A stretch of 64,000 nt of DNA from Heteronotia binoei (taxonomy: Eukaryota): NCBI RefSeq assembly GCF_032191835.1, contig NW_026800229.1, positions 248,001-312,000 of the forward strand, written 5' to 3'. A program made the position numbers and the translations under genes. The first letter of the stretch is position 1. Each line of letters starts with the position of its first letter. Below the pieces are notes generated by a model. The model searched no databases. It was not told where the DNA came from and was given only the letters and a program-made list of their open reading frames with translations. Positions 14,781-61,580 of this stretch are shown here, piece after piece.

Positions 14781-15291
14781 TGCAAGAAGAATCATCCCCA
14801 AACCAGGGGGCAGTGTGTGTGTCTCCATGAGCACTAAAGACCAGCTCTTGCAAACGAGGGGAGCTGTTGGTGTAAGTTTGCTGAACTCCTTATGACTCGG
14901 GGAGGGAAGATGCAGAATTAGGGATCAGCCATTTTTCTCCAGGCCAGTTTGGCTAGGGATCCTGGAGGGTTTTGCCATCTTCTGGGCATGGAACTGGGGT
15001 CACTTGGGATGTATGCGTGTGTGTGTGGGGGGGGTGGGGAAGGCATTTGTGACGTTCCTGTGTTGTGCAGGGGGCCCCTTCCAGCTCTATGTTTCTAGGA
15101 GACCAAGTGGGGGTTCAGCTTGGATCAGCAGCTCAGATCTCCTGGAGCCCTTTTCTCTGCCCGGCACGTATCTGTTGCTCAGACAGATGGGCAAGGGACT
15201 TTAGAGAGAAGGGGGCGGGAGAAATCTCTCTAGGCATTTGCAGGATTTTTCAATAAGGTGTTTTCACACCTCCAGGTTGTGCAGCTGCAGC

Positions 15292-16248
15292 ATGGCCCTC
15301 TCCAACCAGACAGAGGACAGCCCCCTGCTCTTCATTCTGAGGGACATCCCTGGACTGGGCTCCGCACATCGCTGGCTGGTGATCCCGCTGGGCTCCCTGT
15401 ACCTCGTCTCCTTTGTGGGGAACGGCACCATTCTGGGCCTGGTCTGGGCCGAGCGGGGCCTCCACGCGCCCATGTACCTCTTCCTGTGCATGCTGGCCCT
15501 GGCCGACCTGGGCCTTTCGGCCTCCACTCTCCCCTCCATGCTGAGCGTCTTCCTGCTTCGCTCCAGAGTGGTGGCGGCTGAGGCCTGCTTCGCCCAGCTC
15601 TTCTCCATCCATACTTTCTCTGTCATCGAGTCGGCTGTGCTCTTAGCGATGGCCTTTGATCGCTTTGTGGCCATCTGGAACCCTCTGAGGTACACCTCCA
15701 TTTTGACCAGCTCTACGGTGACTAAGATGGGGGCGGCCATTGTTCTCCGAAGTGTCAGCCTCCACCTTCCTCTGCCCTTCATGCTGAGGGAGCTCAGATA
15801 CGGCAAGGCCAAGGGACTTTCTCATTCCTACTGTGTCCATCCAGACGTCCTCAAGCTAGCCTGCGTGGACACACGCGTGAACAGCGCCTATGGTCTTTTC
15901 GTGCTGCTCTCCACGCTCGGGCTGGACTTTCTCCTCATCCTCCTTTCCTACGCCATGATCCTGAAGATGGTGCTGAGCCTGGCTGCCTGGCGGGAGCGCC
16001 TCAAGGCCCTCAACACCTGCGTCTCCCACATCTGTGCCGTCCTCCTCTTTTATACCCCCCTGCTGAGCCTCTCCATGATCCACCGCTTTGGGAAGAAAAT
16101 GCCCCCGCAGGTCTACCTGCTTCTGTCCTACCTCCACTTCCTCCTACCCCCGGTGCTCAACCCAGTGATCTACAGCGTGAAGACCAAGGAGATCCGGCGA
16201 CGAGTCTGCGGGATGTTCCAGCACAAAGGTCGGGGATTCAGGCTCTGA
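15292..16248 (+). CDS. Class I olfactory receptor, family 51-like, intact single coding exon (318 aa)
   Basis: MALSNQT (N-glycosylation site), LHAPMYLFLCMLALADL, MAFDRFVAIWNPLRY, SHSYCVHPDVLKLAC, KALNTCVSHICAV, PPVLNPVIYSVKTKEIR. Acceptor-like TTTTCACACCTCCAG ends at 15275, so 15292 is more likely the start than the ORF-track start 15238. Confidence 0.95.
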   Translation: MALSNQTEDSPLLFILRDIPGLGSAHRWLVIPLGSLYLVSFVGNGTILGLVWAERGLHAPMYLFLCMLALADLGLSASTLPSMLSVFLLRSRVVAAEACFAQLFSIHTFSVIESAVLLAMAFDRFVAIWNPLRYTSILTSSTVTKMGAAIVLRSVSLHLPLPFMLRELRYGKAKGLSHSYCVHPDVLKLACVDTRVNSAYGLFVLLSTLGLDFLLILLSYAMILKMVLSLAAWRERLKALNTCVSHICAVLLFYTPLLSLSMIHRFGKKMPPQVYLLLSYLHFLLPPVLNPVIYSVKTKEIRRRVCGMFQHKGRGFRL

Positions 16249-21688: not shown

Positions 21689-24600
21689 TCACTTGCTGCT
21701 CTTGAGGGTGCCGCACAGGCTGGCCAGCTGCACCTGGGAAGAGAAGACAGGCCTCCGTCAGCCCTGCCATGGGGGTGGGGTGGGGGCACTGTGCATCTGA
21801 CCCCCTCTTCCACGGCAGGTGGGGGCCCACTCTCCCAGCTGAGAGGGGGAAAGCAAGAGTGTGCTCATGCCTGCGCTGGAAACACAAGAGGCCCCAAAGC
21901 AGCACCAAGGGGAGGGCACTCTGCTGAGGGGCAGCCACGCCTGTCTGTCGCAGAAAAAGCCAGTCCCCGCCCCCCATCTTCTTCCCATCCAAATGCTCAG
22001 GGAGCAAATGAGCCCTCTTCCTCCCAAGACAGCAAAGGCCAAAAAGGCAGGCCAGGCAGGGCAAGGAAACGAAGGAGACGTCCTCCCTGGCTGGACTCAG
22101 GTATAGAAAAGCAAAATTCCATAAAGAGTCATTCCAGCTGGAACCAAAGAGTTAGGCTGGACTCATTCTGCCTAGGAGAGAGAGCAAAACCAGGAGAGAA
22201 GGCGGAGGACTGCTGGTGCTCTCTTTTGGGGCCCTGTGCCTGGGACTTCCTGCCCCCCATGGACCTTCCGCTGATCTCCCTCTCCCTCTGCCCAGGAGGC
22301 CCCACATGGCTCTTGCTCCAACACCGCTGGCCACAAAACTCCAGGTCAGGGGGGGGGGGGCCCTCACCGACAGCTTCTTCACGCTCCCCAGGGTGTCCGG
22401 ATTCAAGCGCAGCAGGTCCTGTCTGGAAAGCTCACTGGCTTTTAAGCAGATGCTCTGCAGAGAAGAGGGGAGAAGCTTGGCAGAGCATCTCGAGGAGTAC
22501 TGGGGCAGTGGGCACCAAGGGGAGGGTGTAGCCCCCCTCCCCCGCCCCTCCCCAAATCCTCTGTCCTACCTCCCCTCCCTCAGCAGGGACAGTGATGAAG
22601 ACATCCTTGGTGGCTGCAAGGGGGCTGCCGTTCACAGAGATGCTGAAGACCCGCTCTTGCGCTGTGGGGGCACGCAGGCCAGGCGTTTTGAAGACACTGC
22701 AGCCAGGGGAGGGAGGGGGGGGGGGAGGAGAGAAATGCACTCCAGAATTGCATATAGACAGCTCCCCCCGCCCCGAGAGATCCAGACCACCGGAAGCAGG
22801 TGGCATCTAGCACCACTCAAGGTGATGGCCAGGTCAAGTCAAGGCTGATGGGGAAGGAGAGCTCCAGAGGTGTGCCAACAGAGCAGAAAGGAGGCCAGCC
22901 TTCCCGCCACAGACACAGCCCATGTGCAGAGTGGCTCCCCCCCCCCCCCCGAGAGCCCTCCTCCCTCCAAGCAGGGAGCAGCTGAAACAGCCACAGGCTC
23001 ACCTGGAATCAAACTTCGGGGTGAGTAGAGGGGTAGCGCCCTTGTGAGCAGCCGAGTGGGCCGTCTGGCTGACTGACGGAGTGACAAATTGGACTTTGCT
23101 GGACCTGCAAAGACAGCCAGCCCAGTTGGCAGCTTCCTCAGTCGGCCCGGGGGAGAGCTGGGTCTCCATCCTCCAAGTTCCCCCCTTGCCAGCCCCTTAC
23201 CTCCGGCTTAGACGCGTAGACCTGGCCGTGGGAGGCCTGCTCCTCTTGGAACCCGGGGCCTTTCTGGTGGAGGTCTTTGCCTGAAGGACACAAAAAGCAC
23301 ATGACTTCCAGGTTCTGACCCACAGACAGACAGCTAGGCCAGGCACCAGCCCAGTGCTCAGCAAGGGATACACAAGAACATAAAACAAGCAACGGCTCAT
23401 CCAGTCCAACACTGTGCCATCGGGAGGTCCACCAGCAGGGCCAGAACTCCAGAAGCCCTCCTATTGCCCCCACCCAAGCACCAAGAATGCAAAGCATCAC
23501 TGCCCCAGCCATAGGAAAAGCCATATTGGATCGGGCCATTGGCCTGTCCATTCCAACACTCTGTGTCACACAGGGGCCAAAACCCAAGGGCCATCAGAAG
23601 TCCACCAGCAGGCCCAGAACTCCTCCCGCTCCCCCCCCCGCCAAAGCACCAAGAAGACAGAGCATCAGTGTCCCAGACATAAGAATGTAAGAGAAACCAT
23701 GTTGGATCAGGCCAATGGCCCATTCAGTCCCACACACTGTCACACTGTGGCCATCAGGAGGTCCACCAGCAGGGCCAGAACGCCAGAAGTCCTCCCACTG
23801 TTGCCCTCAAGCGCAAAGAATACAGAGCATCACTGCCCCAAACAGAACATTCCACCATTGCCTTGTGGCTCATAGCCACTGATGGACCTCTTCTCTATGT
23901 CGATCCCCTCTTGAGGTTGTCTATGCTTGTAGCCGCCACCGCTTCCCATGGCAGTGACTTCCACGTGTTAATCACCCTTTGGGTAAAGCCCACCGCTCCT
24001 TCATTTCATCAAGTGCCCATGAATTGTCCCCAGCTAGACCAGCCTCCTTTCCTTCCTTGATCAAGCAACGAGCTCACTGGATCAAGGGAATGCTGCTGAT
24101 GTTGTTTTCTGGGATTTCAGTAAAGCTTTTGACAGGGTCCCCCTATAAGGACTGCAGACTGGACTCTAGGAAAGTGAAGTGGATGGGAACTGCTCGGAGA
24201 ACCACACTCCAAGAGCAGTTGGCAATGGCCTTGCGTCTGAAGGGAGGGAGGTGTCCAGTGGGGGGCCACAGGGCTCTGTTTTGGGCCCGATACGTTTCAA
24301 TATTTTTATCAGTGATCTGGATGAGGGTGTGGAGGGGCTGCTCATTAAACTTTCAGATGACACCAAATTGGGAGGAGCAGTGAACGAAATCTGAACACAC
24401 CTTGGAAAAGTGGGAATATGTGAACAAGATGCAGTTTAACAAGGATAAATGCCTTGAGACCAAGTCCTAGGAGGAAAGGCTGAGGAACAGATCTGAGATG
24501 CCATCCAGGCTCTCACAGAGATCCCAGCAACACCAGCCAGACCATCCTCTCATCATGCGAGCTAAGTTGTCTTGTGCCAGCAAGGCCCCTCCTCCCTCCC

Positions 24601-27600
24601 TCCCTCTAGGGTGGATAAACAGGCCAGTCCCTTCGACAAAGAACGAATGGACTTAAGTCTGACATCAGAAGCCACAACATGCAAAAAACAGGGGGAGGGG
24701 GGACATTTTAACCTCCCAGGATATCCAGTTGCTGGGAGATCAGAAAGACAGCTGAATTGCAACAAGTAATGAAGCTCAAGACAAGGCACCCACTTGGACT
24801 GAAGCGAGACCTCAGTTTCCTGTCTCATGACCAATGCTGGTTTCTCCATGCCTACTACCTCTCTGCATACCACACTTAATCCAATCACGATTTAAACGGT
24901 CATCTGCCTGCTATTGCAGTATGAAGAAGAAACGCCATGTTAGTGTCAAGGGTCTTGCCAGGAATTTCTACTGCCTTCTGTTCTGATGTTTCCTTGCCCT
25001 TTTGCTTTTGCACCACTCTTTGCAACGGAGTTCTCAAGAAGACTCTGCTGGTCTGGCGGTTGCCTAGGCGACCGAGGCCAACTTGCAGGCCAGATGCACC
25101 TGGGAGGGGATGGACCGGAGGGTTCCCCGTGCGTATTTCCCTGCATTTCCTTTGAAATACAATGGGTGTATGGAATGTATATAAGGGAGGCAAAGACTGG
25201 TCCCTTATCCTGAACTTCATCAAGGTTCAATAAGCTGCTACTACACCAACGGTCTGTTTGATGTTCTTGAGAGCCTGAGGACTTGGCAGCTATCTCAAAA
25301 ATAGTGGAACACACTGTATGATCATCACGGCTTATTATAAGTTTACAAACTCTCGCATACACATTCCCATAACATATATGGAGCATGCAAAACACCATGT
25401 CATATTCATTCCAATTCACAATAAACCAAAAGTCCACAAAGAATCGGTATATGCCGAGCCAGTTTGGTGTAGTGCTTAAGTGCACGGACTCTTAACTGGG
25501 AGAACAGGGGTTGATTGCCTTTTCAGGCAAGCCTATAGTGATATCGACTGCTGAGTTGCTAAGAACAAAGAACCGCCATCTATAATACGATCATGGAACT
25601 ATTTAAACGGGCAGAACCAGCGCCAGAACAGTTATTGCTGCCAGACACATTTAATGTGATTTGAATTATGTATTTTAACTTAACTAACTGGTTTTTATAT
25701 GTTTAATTTTTTAATTGTTAAATTTAAAGTTTTATCCATTTATGTTAATGTAAGAATTGTTGTTAGCCGCCCTGAGCCGCCTAGGCGGGGAGGGCGGGAT
25801 ATAAATAAAATTTATTATTATTATTATTCCCCACTTGCAGCTGCTGGAATGGCCTTGAGTCAGCCAGAGCTTCCACAGGAGTTGTCCTTGAAAGGGCAGT
25901 TGCTGTGAGAGCTCTCTCAGCCTCACCCACCTCACGGGGTGTCTATTGTGGGGGAAGACGGTAGAGGAGATTGTGAGACTCAGAGTATAGGGCGGGATAG
26001 AAATCACCTTCTCTGTACAACAGCAGTAGTCAACAATAATGACTCCACATGTACTAGTTTTGGATTCAATAAGTTCAATAAGTTCAAACGAGGTCCCAGT
26101 GTTACTTCTCACTTCATTTTGATACTTTGTCAATGGAAAACACTCTTGTACAGAAGAACAGCAAGAAGAAAAAGAAGAAGACCGTAGATGTACACCCCGC
26201 CCTTCTCTCTGAATCAGAGTGGCTTACCATCTTCTTTACCTTCCCCTTCTCACAACAGACACCCTGTGAGGTAGGTGGGGCTGAGAGAAACTCTTCACAG
26301 CAGCTGCCCTTTCAAGGACAACTCTATGAGAGCTATGGCTGACCCAAGGCATTTCCAGCAGGTGCAAGTGGAGGAGGGGGGAATCAAACCCGGTTCTCCC
26401 AGATAAGAGAGCTCTGGCTGACCCAAAGCCATTCCAGCAGGTGCAAGTGGAGGAGTGGGGAATCAAACCCGGTTCTCCCAGATAAGAGAGCTCTGGCTGA
26501 CCCAAAGCCATTCCAGCAGGTGCAAGTGGAGGAGGGGGGAATCAAACCCGGTTCTCCCAGATAAGAGAGCTCTGGCTGACCCAAGGCATTTCCAGCAGGT
26601 GCAAGTGGAGGAGGGGGGAATCAAACCCGGTTCTCCCAGATAAGAGAGCTCTGGCTGACCCAAGGCCATTCCAGCAGCTGCAAGTGGAGGAGGGGGGAAT
26701 CAAACCCGGTTCTCCCAGATAAGAGACCTCTGGCTGACCCAAGGCCATTCCAGCAGCTGCAAGTGGAGGAGTGGGGAATCAAACCCGGTTCTCCCAGATA
26801 AGAGAGCTATGGCTGACCCAAGGCCATTCCAGCAGCTGCAAGTGGAGGAGTAGGGAATCAAACCCGGTTCTCCCAGATAAGAGAGCTCTGGCTGACCCAA
26901 GGCCATTCCAGCAGCTGCAAGTGGAGGAGTGGGGAATCAAACCCGGTTCTCCCAGATAAGAGAGCTCTGGCTGACCCAAGGCCATTCCAGCAGCTGCAAG
27001 TGGAGGAGTGGGGAATCAAATCCGGTTCTCCCAGAAAAGAGAGCTCTGGCTGACCCAAGGCATTTCCAGCAGGTGCAAGTGGAGGAGGGGGGAATCAAAC
27101 CTGGTTCTCCCAGATAAGACTCCGCACACTTAACCACTAAACCAAACGTATTCAACTTCCAAAATCACACCTGGGCATCTGCAGAGAAGCTTACCTTCCC
27201 TAGTTTCTGGACGCTGGCCTCCGGAGCTCCAGCAGCATCATTCCCCGGTCTGGATCGCTTTCCCTTGGGCAGAATGGGCTGCCCGGCCTCTTCTTCAATG
27301 GTTTCAATAGCCTGTTTGACCTTTTTACCTGTGAAGGTAACAGACCCTCAGGAGACCCTTCACTCCCACAGCCATCGTGGGAGTCCTTTCCCCAGAGAGG
27401 TCAGAGTGACAACCGCGGCCCTCCCCCGCTTCCACATTCTCCTCATCACACCCCTGGCAAGCAGGGGTCAGCTGTCCCGGATTACCCAGAGCCCATTCTT
27501 GCCCCTCTCTATTCCTCTGCACACCCACCTTTCCGGACGGTTTTCACGGGTGTCTGAATGGCTTCTGTTGCCCGTTTGGTAATCTCCAGGATGTCCAAAT

Positions 27601-30600
27601 CCACCTGCAGGCACAAGGGCAGCACTCAGTAAGGCTGGCTCCTTGGGCTGGCCAACACCACAGGCGGGACAGAGGCTACTTACCATGGCGGCCTTCTCCA
27701 GGGCCTTTTCACCTCCTCCCAGAACTGGAGAGGGGAAAAAAAAGGGACCTTTACTGGAGCAGAACTACAACCCTCCAAGGAACAAGGGGAAGCAGCATCT
27801 CAGGGAAAGTGAGAAGAGGCTGGGCGAAACCATCTTCAGGAGTCAAGGTCTCCCCTCTTCTGGACTAATTGGACACATGATGAAGTCCCAGCAAGCTCAC
27901 CCCAGTCAACAGAAGCAAATTTAGAAGCCACCTCCTGCTGCTGGAGCAAACAGCTTGGAAAAGACACATCCAGCCCCATGACTCCATGACAACTGGCACT
28001 GAGTCAAATGCAAACAGCACTCCCCCCCTCCCTGCCATGGATCACTTGCAGGTGCTGGAGTGCCAATTGGACCCCTCTGCCTCCATCCTCCGCACGTACC
28101 ATAGGTGACCCAGTTCATCTCATGCAGAGCTGCAGGCAAGCGGAGAAGTTCCAGGTTGTAAATGTTGTCGATCTCCTTCAAAAGGCTCTCACACTCTGAT
28201 AGCATGTTCTTTTTGCGGGCCTCGACTGCAGAAAAAAAAAAGATGAAGAAAGGCTGGACTAGGAATGGGGCACAAGCACTAGAATTGCTGAGAACTGTTG
28301 GAACAGAACAGAAGCCCTGCTGGATCAGTGACCCATCCAATCCAACACTAAAAAAACCCAGGCGCCATCAGAACATCCGTCAGTGGAGCCAGGACACTAG
28401 AAGCCATCCCACTGCTCCACCCCCCAAGCACCAAGAAGACAGAGCATCCCTGCCCCAGACAGAGGAACATAAGAGAAGTCATGCTGGATCAGGCCCATGG
28501 CCCCTCCAGTCCAACACTCTGTGTCACATCAGAACATAACAGAAGCCCTGTTGGATCAGGCCCATGGCCCCTCCAGTCCAACACTCTGTGTCACAGAAGA
28601 GAAGCCATATTGGATCAGGCCAATGGCCCATCCAGTCCAACACTCTGTGTTGCATAAGAACATAAGAGAAACCCTGCTGGATCAGGCCAATGGCCCCTCC
28701 AGTCCAACACTCTGTGTCACAGAAGAACATAAGAGGAGCCCTGTTGGATCAGGCCAGTGGCCCCTCCAGTCCAACACTCTGTGTCACAGAAGAGAAGCCA
28801 TATTGGATCAGGCCAATAGCCCATCCAGTCCAAAACTCTGTATCACATACGAACATAAGAGAAGCCATATTGGATCAGGCCAATGGCCCATCCAGTCCAA
28901 CACTCTGTGTTGCATAAGAACATAAGAGTGTTGCATAAGAACATAAGAGTGTTGGATCAGGCCAGTGGCCCCTCCAGTCCAACACTCTGTGTCACATAAG
29001 AACATAAGAGAAGCCATGCTGGATCAGGCCAGTGGCCCCTCCAGTCCAACACTCTGTGTCACAGAAGAGAAGCCATATTGGATCAGGCCAATGGCCCATT
29101 CAGTCCAACACTCTGTGTCACATAAGAACATAAGAGAAGCCATATCGGATCAGGCCAATGGCCCCTCCAGTCCAACACTCTGTGTCACATAAGAACAGAA
29201 GAGAAGCCCTGTTGGATCAAGCCAGTGGCCCCTCCAGTCCAACACTCTGTGTCACGTAAGAGAAGCCCTGTTGGATCAGGCCAATGGCCCATCCAGTCCA
29301 ACACTCTGTGTTGCATAAGAACATAAGAGAAACCCTGCTGGATCAGGCCAATGGCCCCTCCAGTCCAACACTCTGTGTCACAGAAGAACATAAGAGGAGC
29401 CCTGTTGGATCAGGCCAGTGGCCCCTCCAGTCCAACACTCTGTGTCACAGAAGAGAAGCCATATTGGATCAGGCCAATGGCCCATCCAGTCCAACACTCT
29501 GTATCACATACGAACATAAGGGAAGCCATATTGGATCAGGCCAATGGCCCATCCAGTCCAACACTCTGTGTTGCATAAGAACATAAGAGAAGCCCTGTTG
29601 GATCAGGCCAGTGGCCCCTCCAGTCCAACACTCTGTGTCACATAAGAACATAAGAGAAGCCATGCTGGATCAAGCCAGTGGCCCCTCCAGTCCAACACTC
29701 TGTGTCACAGAAGAGAAGCCATATTGGATCAGGCCAATGGCCCATCCAGTCCAACACTCTGTGTCACATAAGAACAGAAGAGAAGCCCTGTTGGATCAAG
29801 CCAGTGGCCCCTCCAGTCCAACACTCTGTGTCACGTAAGAGAAGCCCTGTTGGATCAGGCCAGTGGCCCCTCCAGTCCAACACTCTGTGTCACATAAGAA
29901 CATAAAAGAAGCCCTGTTGGATCAGGCCAGTGGCCCCTCCAGTCCAACACTCTGTGTCACATAAGAACATAAGAGAAGCCATGTTGGATCAGGCCAATGG
30001 CCCCTCCAGTCCAACACTCTGTGTCACATAAGAACAGAAGAGAAGCCCTGTTGGATCAGGCCAGTGGCCCCTCCAGTCCAACACTCTGTGTCACATAAGA
30101 ACAGAAGAGAAGCCCTGTTGGATCAGGCCAGTGGCCCCTCCAGTCCAACACTCTGTGTCACATAAGAACATAAGAGAAACCCTGTTGGATCAGGCCAGTG
30201 GCCCATCCAGCCCAACACTCTGTGTCACATAAGAACATAAGAGAAGCCCTGTTGGATCAGGCCAGTGGCCCCTCCAGTCCAACACTCTGTGTCACATAAG
30301 AACATAAGAGAAGCCCTGTTGGATCAGGCCAGTGGCCCCTCCAGTCCAACAGTCTGTGTCACATGAGAACATAAGAGAAGCCCTGTTGGATCAGGCCAGT
30401 GGCCCCTCCAGTCCAACAGTCTGTGTCACATAAGAACATAAGAGAAGCCCTGTTGGATCAGGCCAGTGGCCCCTCCAGTCCAACACTCTGTGTCACATAA
30501 GAACATAAGAGAAGCCCTGTTGGATCAGGCCCATGGCCCCTCCAGTCCAACACTCTGTGTCACATGAGAACATAAGAGAAGCCCTGTTGGATCAGGCCAG

Positions 30601-32964
30601 TGGCCCCTCCAGTCCAACACTCTGTGTCACATAAGAACATAAGAGAAGCCCTGTTGGATCAGGCCCATGGCCCCTCCAGTCCAACACTCTGTGTCACATG
30701 AGAACATAAGAGAAGCCCTGTTGGATCAGGCCAGTGGCCCCTCCAGTCCAACATTCTGTGTCACATAAGAGAAGCCCTGTTGGATCAGGCCAATGGCCCC
30801 TCCAGTCCAACACTCTGTGTCACATAAGAACATAAGAGAAGCCCTGTTGGATCAGGCCAGTGGCCCCTCCAGTCCAACACTCTGTGTCACATAAGAACAT
30901 AAGAGAAGCCATACTGGATCAGGCCAATGGCCCATCCAGTCCAACACTCTGTGTCGCATAAGAACATAAGATAAGCCCTGTTGGATCAGGTCCATGGCCC
31001 ATCCAGTCCAACACTCTGTGTCACACAGTGGCCAAAACCCAGGTGCCATCAGGACATCCATCAATGGGCCCAGGACACTAGAAGCCCTCCCACTGTGCCC
31101 CCCGCAGCACCAAGTACCCAGAGCATCCCTGCCCCAAACATAAGAACACAAGAGAAGCCCTGTTGGATCAGGCCAATGTCCCATCCAGTCCAACACTCTG
31201 TGTCACACAGTAGACAAAAAATCTATATGCCATCAGGAGGTCCATCAGTGAGGCCAGGACTCTAGAAGCCCTTCCACTGTCCCCCCCCCCCCACAAGCAC
31301 CAAGAATACAGAGCATCACTGCCCCAGACATAAGAGAAGCCATGTTGGATCAGGCCAAGGGCCCATCCAGTCCAACACTGTCACACAGTGGCCAAAACCC
31401 TGGTACCATCAGGAGGTCCATCAGTGGGGCCAGGACACTAAAAGCCCTCCCACTGTTCCCTCCCTCCCAAGCACCAAGAATAGAGAGCATCACTGCCCCA
31501 GACAGAATTCCAACAATACACTGTGGCTAATAGCCCCTGATGGACCTCTGCTCCAGATGTTTGTAGCCTACTACAGGGGGTTTTTTTTGGGGGGGGGGCT
31601 TGGGGCCAGTATCATCATTACTAGAAAAGAGTCAAGAGTCCAGGAATACCTTCTAGGCTCAGAAATTTGTGGCAGGAGAGGAGCTGTCGGGAGTCACTGC
31701 TGCTCCCTTCCTGTCTCAAGCTTTGTTATGGTGCTGCTACTGGCCTCTAGCAGCCCAAGCCCCTAATGTTGAGCTGGAAACTCTTTTGATTTAATTTCAA
31801 CCCAATGGTTCTGGTCCGACCTTCTGGGACCACAGAAAACAATTCCACACCATCCTCTAGATGACAACCCTTCAAGTACTTGAAGATGGTGATCCTATCA
31901 CCTCTCAGCCGCTTCCTCTCCAGGCTAAACATGCCCAGCTCCTTCCACCTTTCCTCATAGGACTTGGTCTCCAGACCAAAACAATTCCACACCATCCTCT
32001 ATAGGACAGCCCTTCAAGTACTTGAAGATGGTGATCCTATCACCTCTCAGCCGCCTCCTCTCCAGGCTAAATATGCCCAGCTCCTTCAACCTTTCCTCAT
32101 AGGACTTGGTCTCCAGAGCCCTCACCATCTTTGTTCCCCTCCTCTAGCTCCGTCAACCTCTTCTCATAGGACTTGGTCTCCAGACTCCTCACCATCTTTG
32201 TTGCCCTCCTCTGGATCCGTTCTAGGTTGTCTATGTCCTTCTGAAAATGTGGTGCCCAAAACTGAACACAAGACTCCAGATGAGGTCTAAGCAGAGCAGA
32301 GTAAAGCGATACCATCATTTTGCATGATATGGATGTTTTACTTTTCTTGATACAGCTCAAAATTGCATTTGCCTTTTTAGCCGCCGCATCACACTGTTGA
32401 CTCATGTTCAGTGTATGGTCCACTAAGACCCCGAGATCCTTTTCACACAGACTACTGCTAAGACAAGTCTCCCCCATCCAGTAACCATACATTGGATTTT
32501 TCCTTCCGAAATGCAGAAGTTTACATTGATCCCTGTTAAAATTCATTGCATTGGTTTCAGCCCAGTTTTCCAGCCTATCAAGGTCATCCTGTATTGCAGG
32601 GGCGGCCAATGGTAGCTCGCCAGGTGTTCTTTGCCTACAATTCCCATCAGCCCCAGCCAGCATGGCCGACGGCTGGGGCTGATGGGAGTTGTAGGCAAAA
32701 GCATCTGGAGCGCTACCCTTGGCCGCCCCTGCTGTATCCTGCCTCTGCCTTCTGCTGTGTTTGCACCCCTCCCCATTTTGCATGATCTGCAAATGCAACA
32801 AGCACCCCCTCCGTTCCTTCCTGCAAATCCTCCGAGCCCCCTAAATACACCCCCCCGCGGCCCACCTTCCGGGCGAAGTCCTTGAGGATGGCCTCGGCCT
32901 TCTTGCTGCGCAGCGAGGCCCTCCTGGAGCCCCCCCGGGTGCCCCTCTTCCGCGACGGCGCCAT
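21689..32964 (-). CDS. CDCA8: Borealin (chromosomal passenger complex subunit), 10 coding exons
   Basis: Exons, all GT-AG: 32964-32866 MAPSRKRG...[12 protein letters not shown]; 28225-28100 (V)[41 protein letters not shown]; 27724-27684 [13 protein letters not shown]; 27604-27529 [25 protein letters not shown]; 27328-27195 [13 protein letters not shown]...KLGK; 23280-23201 [10 protein letters not shown]...RLSR; 23104-23003 SSKVQFVTP...TPKFDS; 22696-22570 [42 protein letters not shown]; 22454-22368 SICLKASEL...KKLS; 21733-21689 [14 protein letters not shown]. Collinear with human Borealin (LKDFDREV, YNIEILRLPKALREMNW, QTPLK, FKTPGLR, NGSPLA). All phases join except exon 1/2 (total 917 nt, 1 nt short). 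Confidence 0.93.
23340..23990 (-). mobile_element. CR1 3' UTR fragments with ~160-bp tandem units (CDCA8 intron 5)
   Basis: Repeated GGTCCACCAGCAGGGCCAGAAC...AGCACCAAGAA...CATCACTGCCCC blocks joined to the 67-bp terminus; ORF2-end remnant at 23870-23990. Confidence 0.8.
24150..24460 (+). mobile_element. CR1 ORF2 reverse-transcriptase fragment
   Basis: [41 protein letters not shown] is the CR1 RT motif (FADD degenerate). Confidence 0.85.
26165..27150 (-). repeat. Squam3-type SINE with internal 79-bp tandem array (10 units), in CDCA8 intron 5
   Basis: GGTTCTCCCAGA recurs every 79 bp from ~26392 to ~27103; SINE head at ~27150, tail at ~26170. Confidence 0.9.
28480..31030 (-). repeat. 67-bp CR1-3'-end array in CDCA8 intron 1, with 55-bp deleted variants and a 661-bp higher-order repeat
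   Basis: Same unit; variant block GTTGCATAAGAACATAAGAGAAACCCTGCTGG recurs at ~28650 and ~29311. Confidence 0.95.
31765..32596 (-). mobile_element. CR1 (second family) ORF2 3' portion, with local duplications
   Basis: [31 protein letters not shown]...[32 protein letters not shown]...[14 protein letters not shown]. Confidence 0.9.
32597..32731. mobile_element. hAT-type MITE (135 bp)
   Basis: TIRs CAGGGGCGGCCAA...TTGGCCGCCCCTG; internally palindromic; flanks CTGTATTG / CTGTATCC (degenerate 8-bp TSD). Confidence 0.75.
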
Positions 32965-33320
32965 CCGGGTCCTGCGGGGGGAGAGAGAGGGGAGCTGAGC
33001 ATGCGCGGGGGAAATGCCCCCCCCCGCCCCGCGCGGCCTCCTCCCCCCCCCCCTCACCCGCCGCCTCAACCGTCCCAACCGCCGCAACCGCCGCCGCCGC
33101 CAAATTGAAACTGAGGCGCTTCCCCGGCAGGCAGCCAATCAGCGGCGCCGCTTCGGCCGCCAGCCAATCAGCGAGGCCGGGCACGGAGGCGGCGGAGGGA
33201 GAGCGGCCGCGGCAGCGCCGGGAGGAGAGCGCCGCCCTGCCGGTTGGAGGAGCGACGCTGCAGGAGCTGGAGGGTGCCCGCCGTCTCTGCCTGCTGTGCT
33301 GCCCGGCGGACTGCGAGGGA
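32850..33320 (-). promoter_or_regulatory. CpG-island promoter and 5' non-coding exon of CDCA8
   Basis: Dense CpG; CCAAT boxes at 33135 and 33164; TTTGGCGG (E2F-like) and CHR-like ATTGAA near 33096-33110; donor at 33057 and acceptor at 32972 define an 86-bp 5' UTR intron. Confidence 0.75.
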
Positions 33321-33529
33321 GGGAGGGAGGGAGGCTGCGACTGCTGCTGCTGCTCACGGAAGACTTATATTCTGCCCAGGCCCGACGGGATGTCACGCTC
33401 GCGGCAGGAGGAGGGAGGAAAGAGGCCAGCTGCAGGGTGCCCATGGGATGGGTGCTGCCTGGGCATAGGACAGAACAGAAGCCCTGCTGCAGCTCCTGAG
33501 CTTGGAGGAAGGGCGACTGCAGGGAGGCA

Positions 33530-33980: not shown

Positions 33981-34830
33981 ATGGATCAGGCCAATGGCCC
34001 CTCCAGTCCAGCACTCTGTGTCACACAGTGACCAAAAAACCCAGGTGCCATCAGGAGGTCCATCAGTGGGGCCAGAGAAGCCCTCCCACTGTTGCCCCCC
34101 CCCCAAGCACCATGAATACAGAGCATCACTGCCCCAGACAGAAGAACATAAGAGAAGCCCTGCTAGATCAGGCCAGTGGCCCCTCCAGTCCAACACTCTG
34201 TGTCACATAAGAACATAAGAGAAGCCATGTTGGATCAGGCCAGTGGCCCCTCCAGTCCAACACTCTGTGTCACATAAGAACATAAGAGAAGCCATGTTGG
34301 ATCAGGCCAGTGGCCCCTCCAGTCCAACACTCTGTGTCACATAAGAACATAAGAGAAGCCCTGTTGGATCAGGCCAGTGGCCCCTCCAGTCCAACACTCT
34401 GTGTCACATAAGAACATAAGAGAAGCCCTGATGGATCAGGCCAATGGCCCTCCAGTCCAACACTCTGTGTCACATGAGAACATAAGAGAAGCCCTGTTGG
34501 ATCAGGCCAGTGGCTCATCCAGTCCAACTCTCTGTGTAACATAAGAACAGAAGAGAAGCCCTGTTGGATCAGGCCAGTCCGACACTCTGTGTCACACAGG
34601 GGCCAAAACCCAGGTGCCATTAGGAGGTCCATCAGTGGGGCCAGGACACTAGAAGTCCTCCCACTATGCCCCCCTCCAAACACAAGGAATACAGAGCATC
34701 ATTGCCCCAGACATAAGAACATAAGAGAAGCCCTGCTGGATCAGGCCAATGGCCCCTCCAGTCCAACACTGTGTGTCACACAGGGGCCAAAACCCAGGTG
34801 CCATCAGGAGGTCCACCAGTGGGGCTTCAA
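33980..34830 (-). repeat. Mixed 67-bp and ~160-bp CR1-3'-end tandem units
   Basis: 67-bp units at ~34130-34570 flanked by the longer 3' UTR unit. Confidence 0.85.
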
Positions 34831-36193: not shown

Positions 36194-36389
36194 AACAAAG
36201 ACCCTGCTAGGCACAGCCAGTTCCAGAAGGTGGCGCTGTAGGGCCAGGTTGCATGTGAGAAAGGCAGCTGCTACGTTTGCATTGAGGGTTCCTGTTTTTA
36301 TCCGTGGAACAGGTTTGTTTGTTTGTAGGTCTCTATGTTTTTATTGTATTGCTCAATATACATTTTCAAGAGATACAGAACTTACTGAA

Positions 36390-40559: not shown

Positions 40560-40700
40560 GCAGGGGCTTTATCTCAAGCGGAGAAAAGGGTCTGCCTGAA
40601 GCCAGCTAAGGTATCAGAGGAGCCAGGCATGACTCAGCTGTGACTCAGCAGAACGGGAGGCAGGGCAAAAGTGCAGAGTCATGGCACATGCAGCTCACCC
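40560..40700. promoter_or_regulatory. Candidate erythroid enhancer (LCR HS2-like): tandem NF-E2/MARE plus GATA
   Basis: ATGACTCAGCTGTGACTCAGCA at 40629-40650 (reverse TGCTGAGTCACAGCTGAGTCAT); TTATCT at 40569-40574; unique, non-repeat DNA. Confidence 0.55.
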
Positions 40701-41199
40701 AGCCCCTGTTTGGGAGGGATGTCTTCCTCCAGCTGCTCTTTGCAAGCCCTTTTGGCTAGCAGAAGGCAGGGGAGGGAGGGGAGAGAGCTCCATTACAGAG
40801 GAAGGGGACTGACATTTGCTATTGGGCTCTTTTAGCAACATTCATGGCCTCCTCTGATTCTAGGAGGTGTTCTCTGCCCAAACCCTCTTTTGGTGAGGGG
40901 CAGAGAAAGACTACCCTACAGGAAGGTCCATGAGCACCTTAGTGACCAGCAGGGTCCATGAGTACATTAGTGACCAGCAGCAAGAATTTCAGGGGCAACA
41001 ACAGGGCAGTGAGGCCAAGGCCTTCCCCTGAGCAGAACATCAGAAGAGCCCTGCTGGGTCAGACCAGTGAGGGTCAACCTAGTCCAGCCTTCTGTCTCAC
41101 ACAGTGGGCAGCCAGTTCCTCTGGAGGGCCAACAACAGGGCAGAGAGGCTGAGGCCTTCCCCTGAGAAGAACATCAGAAGAGCCCTGCTGGGTCAGAGC

Positions 41200-53396: not shown

Positions 53397-53662
53397 NNNN
53401 NNNNNNNNNNNNNNNNNNNNNNNNNNNNNNNNNNNNNNNNNNNNNNNNNNNNNNNNNNNNNNNNNNNNNNNNNNNNNNNNNNNNNNNNNNNNNNNNNNNN
53501 NNNNNNNNNNNNNNNNNNNNNNNNNNNNNNNNNNNNNNNNNNNNNNNNNNNNNNNNNNNNNNNNNNNNNNNNNNNNNNNNNNNNNNNNNNNNNNNNNNNN
53601 NNNNNNNNNNNNNNNNNNNNNNNNNNNNNNNNNNNNNNNNNNNNNNNNNNNNNNNNNNNNNN
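53397..53662. other. Assembly gap (266 N)
   Basis: Run of N. Confidence 1.
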
Positions 53663-54286: not shown

Positions 54287-55879
54287 ATGGTGCACTGGAC
54301 CGAGGAAGAGAAGAAGCTCATCACCACCATCTGGGGCAAAGTGGACGTAGCGGAAACCGGCGCCAAACGCCCTGGCCTAGTACGGCACCTGGGGGCTGGG
54401 GGGGAGGGTTGCCTTGGTCACCAGCAGGGGATGGGGGTGCCAGCTCCAGGCTGGAGATTTGGGGGTGGGGCCTGCAGAAGAGAATAGCCTCAGTGGGGTA
54501 CAATAATGCCACAGAGACCACCCTCCGTATTCTCTCCAGGGAAACTGATCTCCATAGTCTGGAGCTGAGCTGTAATTCTGGAGGATCTCCAGGTCCCACC
54601 TGGAGGATGGCACCCCTAGCTGGGAGTGTGTGTGAATGAGTGAGAGTGAGAGAGAGAGAGTTGGGTGCTGCTCCACAGAGCGGGCAAGCCTGAGCCTGTG
54701 TGTTTGCCTCGCCCTCCCCAGCTTGCTGGTGGTGTACCCCTGGACCCAGAGGTTTTTTGCGGATTTTGGGAACCTGTCCAGCGCCACCGCCATTCTGCGG
54801 CAACCCCAAGGGTGCGTGCCCATGGCAAGAAGGTGCTGACCTCCTTCGGAGACGCCATCAAGAACTTGGACAACATCAAGCCGACCTTTGCCAAGCTGAG
54901 CGAGCTGCACTGCGACAAGCTCCACGTGGACCCGGAGAACTTCAGGGTGAGCTGGCACAGGGGGAGGGGTGGGGGTGATCAGCTGAGCTCCTCTCGGGCT
55001 GCCCCAGTTCCCAGGAGGGGGCAGAAACCACCCCCGTCTCCTCTGCATCCACCTTCCATGGCCAGACCCTCCCATCTCCTGTCCGTGGGAGGGAAAATCT
55101 TCCAGGAGGGGGAGAAGAGAGCTGGTGAGGTGGGCAGGAGGGGGTGGGAGAGGTGGCAAATGAGGGCAGGGCTGATAAAGGCAAGGGGTCCCCCTCAATG
55201 CCCAGGGGACCCTTCATGTTCTTCACCCAAAGGGTGATTATCACGTGGAATTCACTGCCACAGGAGGTGGCAGCAGCTACAAGCATAGACAGCTTCAAGA
55301 GGGGGACTGGATCAACATCTGGAGCAGAGGTCCATCAGTGGCTCTTAGCCACAACGTATTGTTGGAACTTTCTGTCTGGGGCAGTGAGGCTCTGGATTCC
55401 TGATGCTTGATGGGGGCACAGTGGGACGGCTTCTAGTGTCCTGGCCCCACGGGTGGACCTCCTGATGGCACCTGGGTTTCTTTTGGCCATCGTGTGCCAC
55501 AGAGTGTTAGACTGGAAGGGCCACTGGTCTAATCCAACATGGCTTTTCTTATGTTCTTATATTCTTGGTGCTTGGGGGGGGGGGGACACAGTGGGAGGGC
55601 TTCTAGCATCCTGGCCCCACTGGTGGACCTCCTGATGGCACTTGGGGGTTTTCTGGCCCCTGTGTGACACAGTGTTGGACTGGAGGGGCCACTGGCCTGA
55701 TCCAACAGGCCTTCTCTTATGTTCTTATCTTCTCCCTCTTCTCTTGCAGCTTCTGGGCGACGTCCTCACTCATCGTCATGGCCGCCCACTTCGGGAAGGA
55801 CTTCACCCCCGCCGTCCACGCCGCCTTCCACAAGCTGGTCCGCGTGGTGGCCCACGCCCTGGCTCACCGCTACCACTAG
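54287..55879 (+). CDS. HBB: Beta-type globin gene 1, 3 exons, with four 1-nt insertions (assembly errors or recent pseudogene)
   Basis: Exons 54287-54379 (93 nt vs canonical 92), 54722-54946 (225 vs 223), 55750-55879 (130 vs 129). [26 protein letters not shown]..., [65 protein letters not shown], ...ALAHRYH*. AATAAA at 55932. Confidence 0.85.
55215..55725 (+). mobile_element. CR1 3' end in intron 2 of globin gene 1
   Basis: [17 protein letters not shown] remnant plus a duplicated 3' UTR unit. Confidence 0.85.
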
Positions 55880-58981: not shown

Positions 58982-61580
58982 ATGGTGCACTGGACCGACG
59001 AAGAGAAGCAGCTCATCACGTCGACCTGGTGCAAAGTCGACCTGGGGGAAATCGGCGCCGAATCCCTGGCCTAGTAAGGACCCCCCACCCTGGGGTGCTT
59101 GGGGGGAGTGCGTGAGGCTGGGGGGTGGCCTCCTCAGGCAGGACAAGGGTTGTTGGGGTATGTGCAGGGGGTTGCCAGCTCCAGGCTGGAGAACTCCTGG
59201 AGATTTGGGGGCAGACAGCGCATCAGTCTTCACCCTTAATGCCTCCATTTTCTCCAGGGGAAGTGATATCTGCAGTGTGGAGTTTAGCTGTAATTTTTTT
59301 TGGGGGGGGGGGGGTCCCCAGGTCCTGCCTGGAGGCTGGCAGCCCTCGGTCACAACAAGAGGGCTTTGTTTTCTGCGGCCCCAGAAGGTCGGACCAGAAT
59401 CAATGGGCTGAAACTGAATCAGAAGAGTTTCTGGCTCCACATTAGGAAGAACTTCCTGACCTTTAGAGAGGCTCCTCAGTGGAAGAGGCTTCCTCCTTGG
59501 GAGGTGGTGGGCTCTCCGTCCTTGGAGGTTTTTAAACAGAGGCTGGATGGCCATCTGACAGCAATGAAGATCCTGTGAATTTAGGGGGAGGTGTTTGTGA
59601 GTTTAGAGCAATTCCTCAGTGGAACAGGCTTCCTCGGGAGGTGGTGGGCTCTCTTTCCTTGGAGATTTTTCAACAGAGGCTAGATGGCCATCTGACAGCA
59701 ATGAAGATCCTGTGAATTTAGGGGGAGGGGTTTGTGAGTTTAGAGCGGTTCCTCAGTGGAACAGGCTTCCTCCTTGGGAGGTGGTGGGCTCTCCTTCCTT
59801 GGAGGTTTTTCAACAGAGGCTAGATGGCCATCTGACAGCAATGAGGATCCTGTGAATTTAGGGGGAGGTTTTTGTGACTTTCCTGCATTGTGCAGGGGAT
59901 TGAACTAGATGACCCTGGAGGTCCCTTCCAACTCTAGGATTCTAAGACTCACCCTCTCTCTGTGTGTATTTGCCTCTCCCTCCCCCCACAGCTTGCTGGT
60001 GGTGTACCCCTGGACCCAGAGGTTCTTTGCCCACTTTGGGAACCTGTCCAGCGCCACCGCCATCTGCGGCAACCCCAAGGTGCGTGCCCATGGCAAGAAG
60101 GTGCTGACTTCCTTCGGGGAGGCCATCAAGAACCTCGACAACATCAAGAAGACCTTCTCCAGCCTGAGCGAGCTGCACTGCGACAAGCTCCATGTCGACC
60201 CCGAGAACTTCAAGGTGAGCTGGAAGGGGGGGGGGGGGTGGCCCTAAGCCCATATGAATGTATGAAGCTGCCTTCTACTGAATCAGACCCTCCTTGGTCC
60301 AACAAAGTCAGTCTTGTCTACTCAGACTGGCAGAGGCTCTCCAGGGTCTCAAGCTGAGGTTTTTCATGCCTACTTGCCTGGACCCTTTTGAGTTGGAGAT
60401 GCCAGAAATCGAACCTGGGACCTTCTGCTTCCCAAGCAGATGCTCTGCCACTGAGCCACTGTTACTCTCCAGGGTCTCCAGCTCGGGTTTTCCACGCCTA
60501 CTTGCCTGGACCCTTTTTGGCTGGAGATGCCGGGGATTGAACCTGAGACCTTCTGCTTACCAAGCAGATGCTCTACCTCTGAGCCACAGCCCCATTCATG
60601 GCTCTGCAGTGTCTCCAGCTGAGGTTTTTCAGTCTACTTGCCTGGACCCTTTTTAGTTGGAGATGCTGGGGATTGAACCTGAGACCTTCTGCTTACCAAG
60701 CAGAGGCTCTGCCACTGAGCCACAACCCCATTCATGGCTCTCCAGGGACTCAAGCTGAGGTTTTTCATGCCTTTTTAGTTGGAGATGCCGGGGATTGAAC
60801 CTGGGACCTTCTGCTTCCCAAGCAGGAGCTCTACCACTGAGCCAGCATCCCTCAAAAGTCTTTCACATCACCTCCCAACTGGTTCTTTTAACTGGAGATG
60901 CCAGGGATTGAACCTGGGACCTTCTGCTTACCAAGCAGATGCTCTACCACTGAGCCACCTTAGACATATGAACATCTGAAGCTGCCCCTTACTGAATCAG
61001 ACCCCCCCCCCCCGCCCCGGGGCCATCCAAGTCAGTCTTGTCTCCTCAGACTGGCAGCGGCTCTCCAGGGTCTCCAGCTGAGGTTTTTCACACCTTTGTG
61101 CCTGGACCCTTTTTAGTTGGAGATGCCGGGGATTGGTCTCCCTAGAGAACAATGGAGTGCCCAGCAGACATTTCCCTCCCGCCCGGGGCTTTCTAACCCT
61201 GAAGGGGGGGGCTCCAAACTGGGGGATCCCCTGCCCCCGCCTGGGGAGTGGCAACCGTAGATCCATCAGAGGGGCATGTTCTTGTCCCCCTCCCCCAAAC
61301 TGCATTTCTTGCCCAGTGCCCAGCAAGGGTTGCCACTGCAGAAGGGGCAAGAAGCCCCCTGGACCATGCCTTGTGTGCCCCTCCTCCCACCTGGATGCGG
61401 TCGAAGTGCCAGCCGAGGGGGACCCTTCACACTCTGCCTCTTCTCTTGCAGCTTCTGGGCGACGTCCTCATCATCGTCATGGCCTCCCACTTCGGGAAGG
61501 ACTTCACCCCCGCTGTCCACGCCGCCTTCCACAAGCTGGTCCGCGTGGTGGCCCACGCCCTGGCCCTCCGCTACCACTGA
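58982..61580 (+). CDS. HBB: Beta-type globin gene 2, intact, 147 codons
   Basis: Exons 58982-59073 (92 nt), 59992-60214 (223 nt), 61452-61580 (129 nt), the canonical globin sizes and phases. [147 protein letters not shown]; distal His63, proximal His92; AATAAA at 61619. Confidence 0.97.
59360..59945 (+). mobile_element. CR1 (second family) 3' end with ~120-bp internal tandem repeats, intron 1 of globin gene 2
   Basis: GGAGGTGGTGGGCTCT...AACAGAGGCTAGATGGCCATCTGACAGCAATGA repeated about 3-4 times, then CR1 terminus. Confidence 0.85.
60255..61135 (-). mobile_element. Squam2-type SINEs with tandemly repeated head/body, intron 2 of globin gene 2
   Basis: TTGGAGATGC..GGGATTGAACCTG.GACCTTCTGCTT.CCAAGCAGA..CTCT..CACTGAGCC repeated about 5 times. 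Confidence 0.75.

Follow-up and report, generated by a model that had tools for sequence, protein, structure and literature searches.

The gene for Borealin, CDCA8, stands between an olfactory receptor (OR) gene of OR51-like type and a pair of beta-globin genes in the genome of the gecko Heteronotia binoei. It lies in a stretch of 64,000 nucleotides (hereafter the window: positions 248,001 to 312,000 of the forward strand of contig NW_026800229.1, NCBI RefSeq assembly GCF_032191835.1), whose features are listed with their coordinates in Table 1. We consider it highly probable that this gene is the single-copy squamate orthologue of CDCA8 and that it moved at the DNA level, together with its introns and its promoter, from a pairing with AIRIM into the OR/beta-globin locus before the crown squamates diverged. 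The gene itself is an ordinary one that had been annotated before; what makes it interesting is where it lies and how old this placement is. A prediction made earlier from the letters of the window (the original prediction) had described a multi-exon Borealin gene in the OR-to-globin interval, and matches in Pfam, PDB and RefSeq confirm that description.

Gene order around CDCA8 in squamates

Homologues were gathered with an exon-2 search and a full-length word search, the latter listing the best 120 of 292 protein matches, and their genomic places were then looked up. Locus context was read within 10-kb flanks; in Gekko kuhli the globins and HS2 lie farther away, so record coordinates were compared instead. 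In this second gecko, the globins occupy 172.813-172.822 Mb (minus strand), Borealin 172.8507-172.8585 Mb (plus strand) and the OR gene 172.863 Mb (minus strand). Two globins, Borealin and the OR gene are contained within 50 kb, with 28 kb between Borealin and the nearest globin, and both order and orientations are those of H. binoei. The OR gene is the orthologue of the one in the window, in equal place and orientation, with 82.6% nucleotide identity over 1249 nt.

The arrangement recurs outside the geckos. In the pit viper Protobothrops mucrosquamatus, a single 188-kb scaffold carries a globin gene, a core resembling the beta-globin enhancer HS2, a second globin gene, Borealin and an OR gene, all within 35 kb, Borealin lying 5.6 kb from the second globin in opposite orientation. 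In the skink Tiliqua scincoides, 6.5 kb separate Borealin from a globin in divergent orientation, and farther on lie two further globins and an OR gene. The OR side was also recovered in the anguid Elgaria, where an OR gene lies 6.4 kb 3' of Borealin, and in the agamid Phrynocephalus, where an OR-containing gene model lies ~10 kb 3' of it. Contigs of one and the same size hold Borealin and beta-globin in Paroedura, Sphaerodactylus, Eublepharis and Candoia, which puts both genes on a single chromosome-scale record. Because the arrangement is common to geckos, skink and viper, and its OR side is found in Elgaria and Phrynocephalus, we would date it before the crown squamates.

Two peculiarities of gene models were seen in Phrynocephalus forsythii. 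A 215-aa model with a p450 Pfam match (L012:15671-22328) lies between Borealin and the OR model, and the latter includes ribosomal S17 domains by fusion; both are probably annotation artefacts.

Literature searches returned no published report of a linkage between CDCA8/borealin and globin genes in squamates, and a study of squamate rearrangements (PMC13005343) is silent on it.

CDCA8 and AIRIM in outgroups

In the owl Tyto alba and the tortoise Gopherus evgoodei, Borealin is head-to-head with a CA109-like gene (AIRIM). The penguin Spheniscus humboldti carries Borealin and a beta-type globin on two separate chromosome-scale records, contigs of 9.7 and 231.5 Mb. Human CDCA8, at 1p34.3, is also head-to-head with AIRIM (C1orf109). 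The original prediction had proposed a survey of synteny in squamates, turtles and birds, and had asked whether the gecko arrangement is already ancestral in sauropsids. The survey gives the OR-CDCA8-globin order in Gekko kuhli and Protobothrops and the AIRIM pairing in owl and tortoise, so the answer to that question is no.

The same prediction had found no recognisable AIRIM exons on the divergent side of CDCA8, and this absence holds. With owl and tortoise AIRIM exon pieces as queries, the window and the squamate loci returned no AIRIM exons, only repeats; the tortoise pieces detect owl AIRIM with E values of 1e-10 to 1e-13. The broken AIRIM synteny is the relocation itself and is not evidence against orthology.

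Gene structure and orthology

CDCA8 is encoded on the minus strand of the window. Its coding sequence runs from 32964 to 21689 in 10 coding exons with GT-AG borders and is interrupted by nine introns; the interval of the original prediction began at 21689, the final base of the stop codon. The 3' untranslated region (UTR) runs on to lower coordinates, with ATTAAA at ~21258 and AATAAA at ~20866. Homology searches were made exon by exon, and the H. binoei RefSeq 'borealin' (P0055) was used as the full-length protein. The translations of exons 2 (from an internal Met) to 10 are exact substrings of this protein, in order.

Both ends of the Borealin domain plan are present. The N-terminal helix is found in the exon-2 open frame (PF10444, E 7.7e-10), and exon 2 is also matched by human Borealin chains in the PDB (2RAW, 2QFA and 6YIE; 48-58 bits). 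The C-terminal dimerisation domain is found in exon 8 (PF10512; Table 1), and exon 7 reaches 19.0 bits (E 0.0016) against the same family, just below the Pfam cut-off of 19.5. Compared over its whole length with a mammalian Borealin, the gecko protein shows 46% identity, and the alignment extends to the last mammalian residue.

The introns are repeat-rich. A 67-bp unit is present 39 times at 28465-31025 (intron 1) and a 79-bp unit 10 times at 26328-27119 (intron 5), and the units are found again elsewhere in the window, for example at 34138-34578.

A maximum-likelihood tree of 40 Borealins, one gene per species, follows the species tree, with the geckos as one clade and support in the Shimodaira-Hasegawa-like approximate likelihood-ratio test (SH-aLRT) of 100 for squamates, 99 for archelosaurs and 95 for mammals. 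The gecko, anguid, snake, tortoise and owl loci all have a phase-1 first intron at the identical codon (the Anolis acceptor was unresolved at the coordinate used). Constraint on the coding sequence shows in a ratio of nonsynonymous to synonymous substitution rates (dN/dS) of 0.41 in the comparison with Gekko kuhli and of 0.17-0.29 for squamates that are more distant. The original prediction had taken the protein for canonical Borealin and not Borealin-2, and its identity to a mammalian Borealin and its nesting in an amniote tree with one gene per species, whose bird and turtle members are AIRIM-linked, indirectly favour that assignment. No CDCA9 sequence occurs among the homologue matches listed. 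A processed retrocopy was considered and is ruled out by the nine coding introns, the ancestral position of the first intron and the conserved CpG-island promoter.

In the tree, the stem branch of the squamate Borealins is long (0.32) and their tips exceed in length those of the turtle and bird sequences, which may reflect only a generally faster squamate rate. NCBI labels the genes of Anolis, Hemicordylus and Paroedura 'borealin-like', though the tree puts all of them with the other squamate Borealins; the label possibly stems from the broken synteny.

Weighing the proposed relocation

A number of points weigh against the history proposed above. As assembled, the reading frame of H. binoei CDCA8 is interrupted, and its RefSeq model begins at an internal Met. 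A gap of 266 N parts CDCA8 from the globins in the same assembly. In Anolis, no OR or globin gene is called within 10 kb of CDCA8. The globin linkage was seen in Gekkota, Scincoidea and Serpentes, a coverage that leaves out Iguania, Lacertoidea and Elgaria, and tuatara is outside the sample. Finally, the choice between paralogues follows from tree shape, identity and outgroup synteny and not from a joint CDCA8/CDCA9 tree.

The interruption of the frame lies at the end of exon 1. A comparison of this junction in seven species shows that exon 1 lacks one nucleotide when measured against the phase-1 intron common to the six others. GG stands at 32870-32869 where the relatives carry GGG before the GT donor, and exon 1 runs into exon 2 out of frame. 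The original prediction had spoken of a full CDCA8, which is right for the set of ten coding exons but not for the frame. The missing G is probably an assembly error, judging from the sequence: the gene is single-copy, CDCA8 is an essential gene, its remaining sequence is free of defects, and run-length insertions are also seen in beta-globin gene 1. It is improbable that the deletion is real and that use of the internal Met or of an alternative acceptor yields an N-terminally altered Borealin, or that the gene is decaying. That explanation would account for the G lacking relative to six species, for a coding-exon total of 917 nt and for a RefSeq protein of 265 aa that starts at the exon-2 Met, lacks ~40 N-terminal residues and carries no correction flag; with an in-frame acceptor at 28252 it would gain 9 residues. 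However, exons 2-10 of this single-copy, essential gene carry no further defect, the H. binoei terminal branch (0.13) is ordinary for geckos, dN/dS is below 1, and the two single-base run-length differences in the nearby beta-globin gene 1 suggest indel noise in the assembly.

Less likely still is an extra duplicate made at the DNA level, its parent CDCA8 remaining beside AIRIM elsewhere in squamate genomes. Room for such a parent is left by the evidence coming from protein matches, of which the best 120 of 292 were listed. Among these, however, the annotated squamate proteomes hold no second CDCA8 copy, each annotated squamate having one Borealin gene when isoforms are counted once, and a conserved second copy would rank among the matches listed. 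The squamate sequences also form a single clade with the topology of the species tree. Because no second CDCA8 was found in these proteomes, we read the event as a relocation and not as the addition of a duplicate.

A mis-join that brought together CDCA8 and globin/OR genes which are not true neighbours, an alternative raised in the original prediction, is very improbable. The gap between CDCA8 and the first globin, and the nature of the H. binoei contig as a 412-kb unplaced piece, would allow it. Against this, three other independent assemblies, those of Gekko kuhli, Protobothrops and Tiliqua, carry the CDCA8-globin linkage; the CDCA8 side of the gap holds the HS2-like core, which is a globin-locus element in other species; and the OR gene that flanks CDCA8 on its other side has an equally placed orthologue in Gekko kuhli. 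Equally improbable is a recent translocation or duplication confined to the H. binoei lineage, for which nothing speaks beyond the window itself and which is refuted by the arrangement in Gekkota, Scincoidea and Serpentes and by its OR side in Anguimorpha and an agamid. Of the translocation or duplication first suggested, the DNA-level move with introns and promoter kept is upheld, but the event is not special to H. binoei and, in our reading, not a duplication.

The relocation that we favour would have proceeded from an ancestral state in which CDCA8 stood head-to-head with AIRIM. At some time between the split of lepidosaurs from turtles and archosaurs and the divergence of the crown squamates, a DNA segment with CDCA8, all its introns and its CpG-island promoter of NF-Y type would have left AIRIM. 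The segment would have settled among the OR-embedded beta-globin genes, its direction of transcription leading away from them, with the original site no longer occupied. CDCA8 would then have remained in this locus in geckos, skinks and snakes, and beside an OR gene in the anguid and the agamid. Its protein presumably performs the ordinary job of Borealin, a component of the chromosomal passenger complex that bundles with INCENP and Survivin.

Promoter, enhancer and possible regulation

The original prediction had given CDCA8 a CpG promoter of its own, and the base composition around its 5' end agrees with this (Table 1). Two inverted CCAAT boxes lie at ~33168-33164 and ~33139-33135, 29 nt apart, followed by an E2F-like TTTGGCG at ~33104-33098. 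The block 33096-33294 is kept in Gekko kuhli, with both CCAAT boxes at the same 29-nt spacing. At its 5' end the gene probably has a short first exon that is non-coding, followed by a small intron in the 5' UTR. Human CDCA8 is reportedly driven by NF-Y, to go by the title of a 2015 paper by Dai et al. that is cited in PMC6668781. Because a twin-CCAAT layout typical of cell-cycle genes has been retained, CDCA8 would appear still to be driven by its own cell-cycle promoter.

In Gekko kuhli the promoter block (L001:7065-7268) is ~2.7 kb upstream of the exon with the ATG; in H. binoei it is only ~130-330 nt upstream. Because these distances differ, the 5' UTR intron would be of very different length in the two geckos.

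From the HS2-like core of the window, the distance to the CDCA8 start codon is 7.6 kb and that to the first globin gene ~13.6 kb. The core aligns with sequences of Protobothrops and Tiliqua and is conserved in gecko, viper and skink, in varying position. In the gecko it lies between CDCA8 and the globins, and in the viper between two globin genes. In Tiliqua scincoides, the core (L009:24353-24454, record ~760.2 kb) is inverted relative to that of the gecko and lies 8.6 kb past the CDCA8 3' end, on the side opposite the globins. Because the skink core lies beyond this 3' end, skink CDCA8 sits between this copy of the enhancer and the globins. The skink loci compared leave ~2.8 kb between them uncovered, where another HS2-like copy is possible.

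A consensus scan found one CTCF-like motif in the window, at 36223-36237 with one mismatch, where 1.6 are expected by chance; the count is not above chance. The motif falls in a 48-nt block (36197-36244) kept in Gekko kuhli (L001:5911-5958), with the CDCA8 promoter on one side of it and the HS2-like core on the other.

We offer as a tentative and rather doubtful proposal, drawn from sequence features, that CDCA8 has lain in an active beta-globin domain since before the squamate radiation, and that the enhancer might boost it in dividing, nucleated erythroblasts or, alternatively, a boundary evolved in squamates might shield its cell-cycle promoter from this very strong, tissue-specific enhancer. 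The original prediction had suggested that CDCA8 is possibly within reach of the globin locus control region (LCR); what the sequence shows is proximity.

Neighbouring genes in the window

The window has the marks of an OR-embedded beta-globin locus: a class I OR gene, two beta-globin genes and an upstream HS2-like core with MARE and GATA sites. The best PDB match of the OR gene is consOR51 (393 bits), with class II receptors at 139 bits or less, in line with the OR51-like gene that the original prediction had placed on this side.

In exon 2 of beta-globin gene 1 (54790-54815), TT at 54793-54794 and GGG at 54810-54812 stand where gene 2 has T and GG, and the frame is shifted. Gene 1 is either a pseudogene or the product of run-length assembly errors; of the two, gene 2 alone finds an H. 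binoei protein among the matches listed. Intron 2 of gene 2 contains five tandem tRNA-like units at 60401-60958 on the minus strand (Rfam tRNA, 46-59 bits), which are probably an array of tRNA-derived short interspersed elements (SINEs).

In the viper (L008:2811-4410) and the skink (L009:2148-3538), a divergent globin lies 5.6-6.5 kb from the CDCA8 start. Neither gecko has a globin at this site; both have a spacer of 21-28 kb. The CDCA8-proximal globin of viper and skink could be the early-branching snake beta-II lineage (PMC5786229), lost in geckos.

Table 1. Features of the H. binoei window, by position (position 1 is the first letter of the window).
Feature	Position	Strand	Remarks
OR51-like (class I) gene	15238..16248	+	intact, single-exon, tail-to-tail with CDCA8; Pfam 7tm_4 E 2.8e-111
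CDCA8 coding exon 10	21689..21733	-	14 codons and TGA; matches RefSeq borealin
CDCA8 coding exon 9	22368..22454	-	within C-terminal dimerisation region; matches RefSeq borealin
CDCA8 coding exon 8	22570..22696	-	core of Pfam Borealin domain; PF10512 E 1.4e-11
CDCA8 coding exon 7	23003..23104	-	Pfam Borealin match below cut-off; matches RefSeq borealin
CDCA8 coding exon 6	23201..23280	-	basic linker; matches RefSeq borealin
CDCA8 coding exon 5	27195..27328	-	matches RefSeq borealin
CDCA8 coding exon 4	27529..27604	-	matches RefSeq borealin
CDCA8 coding exon 3	27684..27724	-	matches RefSeq borealin
CDCA8 coding exon 2	28100..28225	-	N-terminal helix binding INCENP and Survivin; Pfam Nbl1_Borealin_N
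CDCA8 coding exon 1	32866..32964	-	ATG at 32964; one G short
CpG-island promoter	32800..33400	-	GC 0.73, CpG observed/expected 0.83-0.87
HS2-like beta-globin enhancer core	40590..40720	+	GATA site and three MARE-like sites; between CDCA8 promoter and globins
Assembly gap, 266 N	53397..53662	.	between CDCA8/HS2 side and globin genes
Beta-globin gene 1	54287..55879	+	exon 2 with two single-base insertions relative to gene 2
Beta-globin gene 2	58982..61580	+	intact; RefSeq 'hemoglobin subunit beta-2-like' (P0157), exons 1 and 3 exact

Comparison with known systems

With the ancestral amniote CDCA8-AIRIM pair, the squamate gene shares the orthologue, the exon-intron plan with its phase-1 first intron, and a CpG-island promoter with CCAAT boxes. 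It differs in lacking AIRIM on the divergent side and in standing beside beta-globin genes and an OR51-like gene.

Beta-globin genes are embedded among OR genes in mammals, birds, crocodilians and turtles (Hoffmann et al. 2018, PMC5786229). The squamate locus has in common with this amniote arrangement (PMC5786229) the flanks of class I OR genes and an upstream HS2-like enhancer with MARE and GATA sites. Unlike it, squamates hold inside the locus a gene that is neither globin nor OR and is linked to proliferation, 5.6-28 kb from the nearest globin.

A partial parallel is offered by NPRL3, which spans cis-regulatory elements of the alpha-type globins (PMC5786229). There too, a broadly expressed non-globin gene beside globin enhancers has long been retained. 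NPRL3, however, itself hosts the enhancers in an arrangement ancestral to vertebrates, whereas CDCA8 would have arrived secondarily and the enhancer lies outside the gene.

Within its own family, CDCA8 is to be set apart from CDCA9 (Borealin-2, Dasra-A), a maternal paralogue that fish, frogs and some reptiles possess (PMC7550704; bioRxiv 10.1101/2024.08.19.608573). Zebrafish Cdca9 is reported to be 21% identical to the human protein (10.1101/2024.08.19.608573, a preprint). The gecko protein shares family and domain plan with CDCA9, but its identity to a mammalian Borealin is higher (46%), it belongs to the amniote Borealin clade, and it is not filed as CDCA9.

Significance

For an essential housekeeping gene to be moved singly at the DNA level and then fixed across a whole order is not common, and the regulatory domain that received CDCA8 is among the best studied in vertebrates. 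The arrangement also fills a gap, in that the main study of sauropsid globin clusters left the squamate beta-globin flanks unresolved, and the name CDCA8 does not occur in it (PMC5786229). For annotators, the 'borealin-like' names given to orthologous squamate Borealins are a warning.

The locus further provides a test case for the coexistence of a CpG-island cell-cycle promoter with an enhancer of the locus-control type. The squamate radiation is ~200 million years old, and if CDCA8 has indeed lain within an active beta-globin domain since before it, the locus would be a natural experiment of that duration on the choice between enhancers and promoters.

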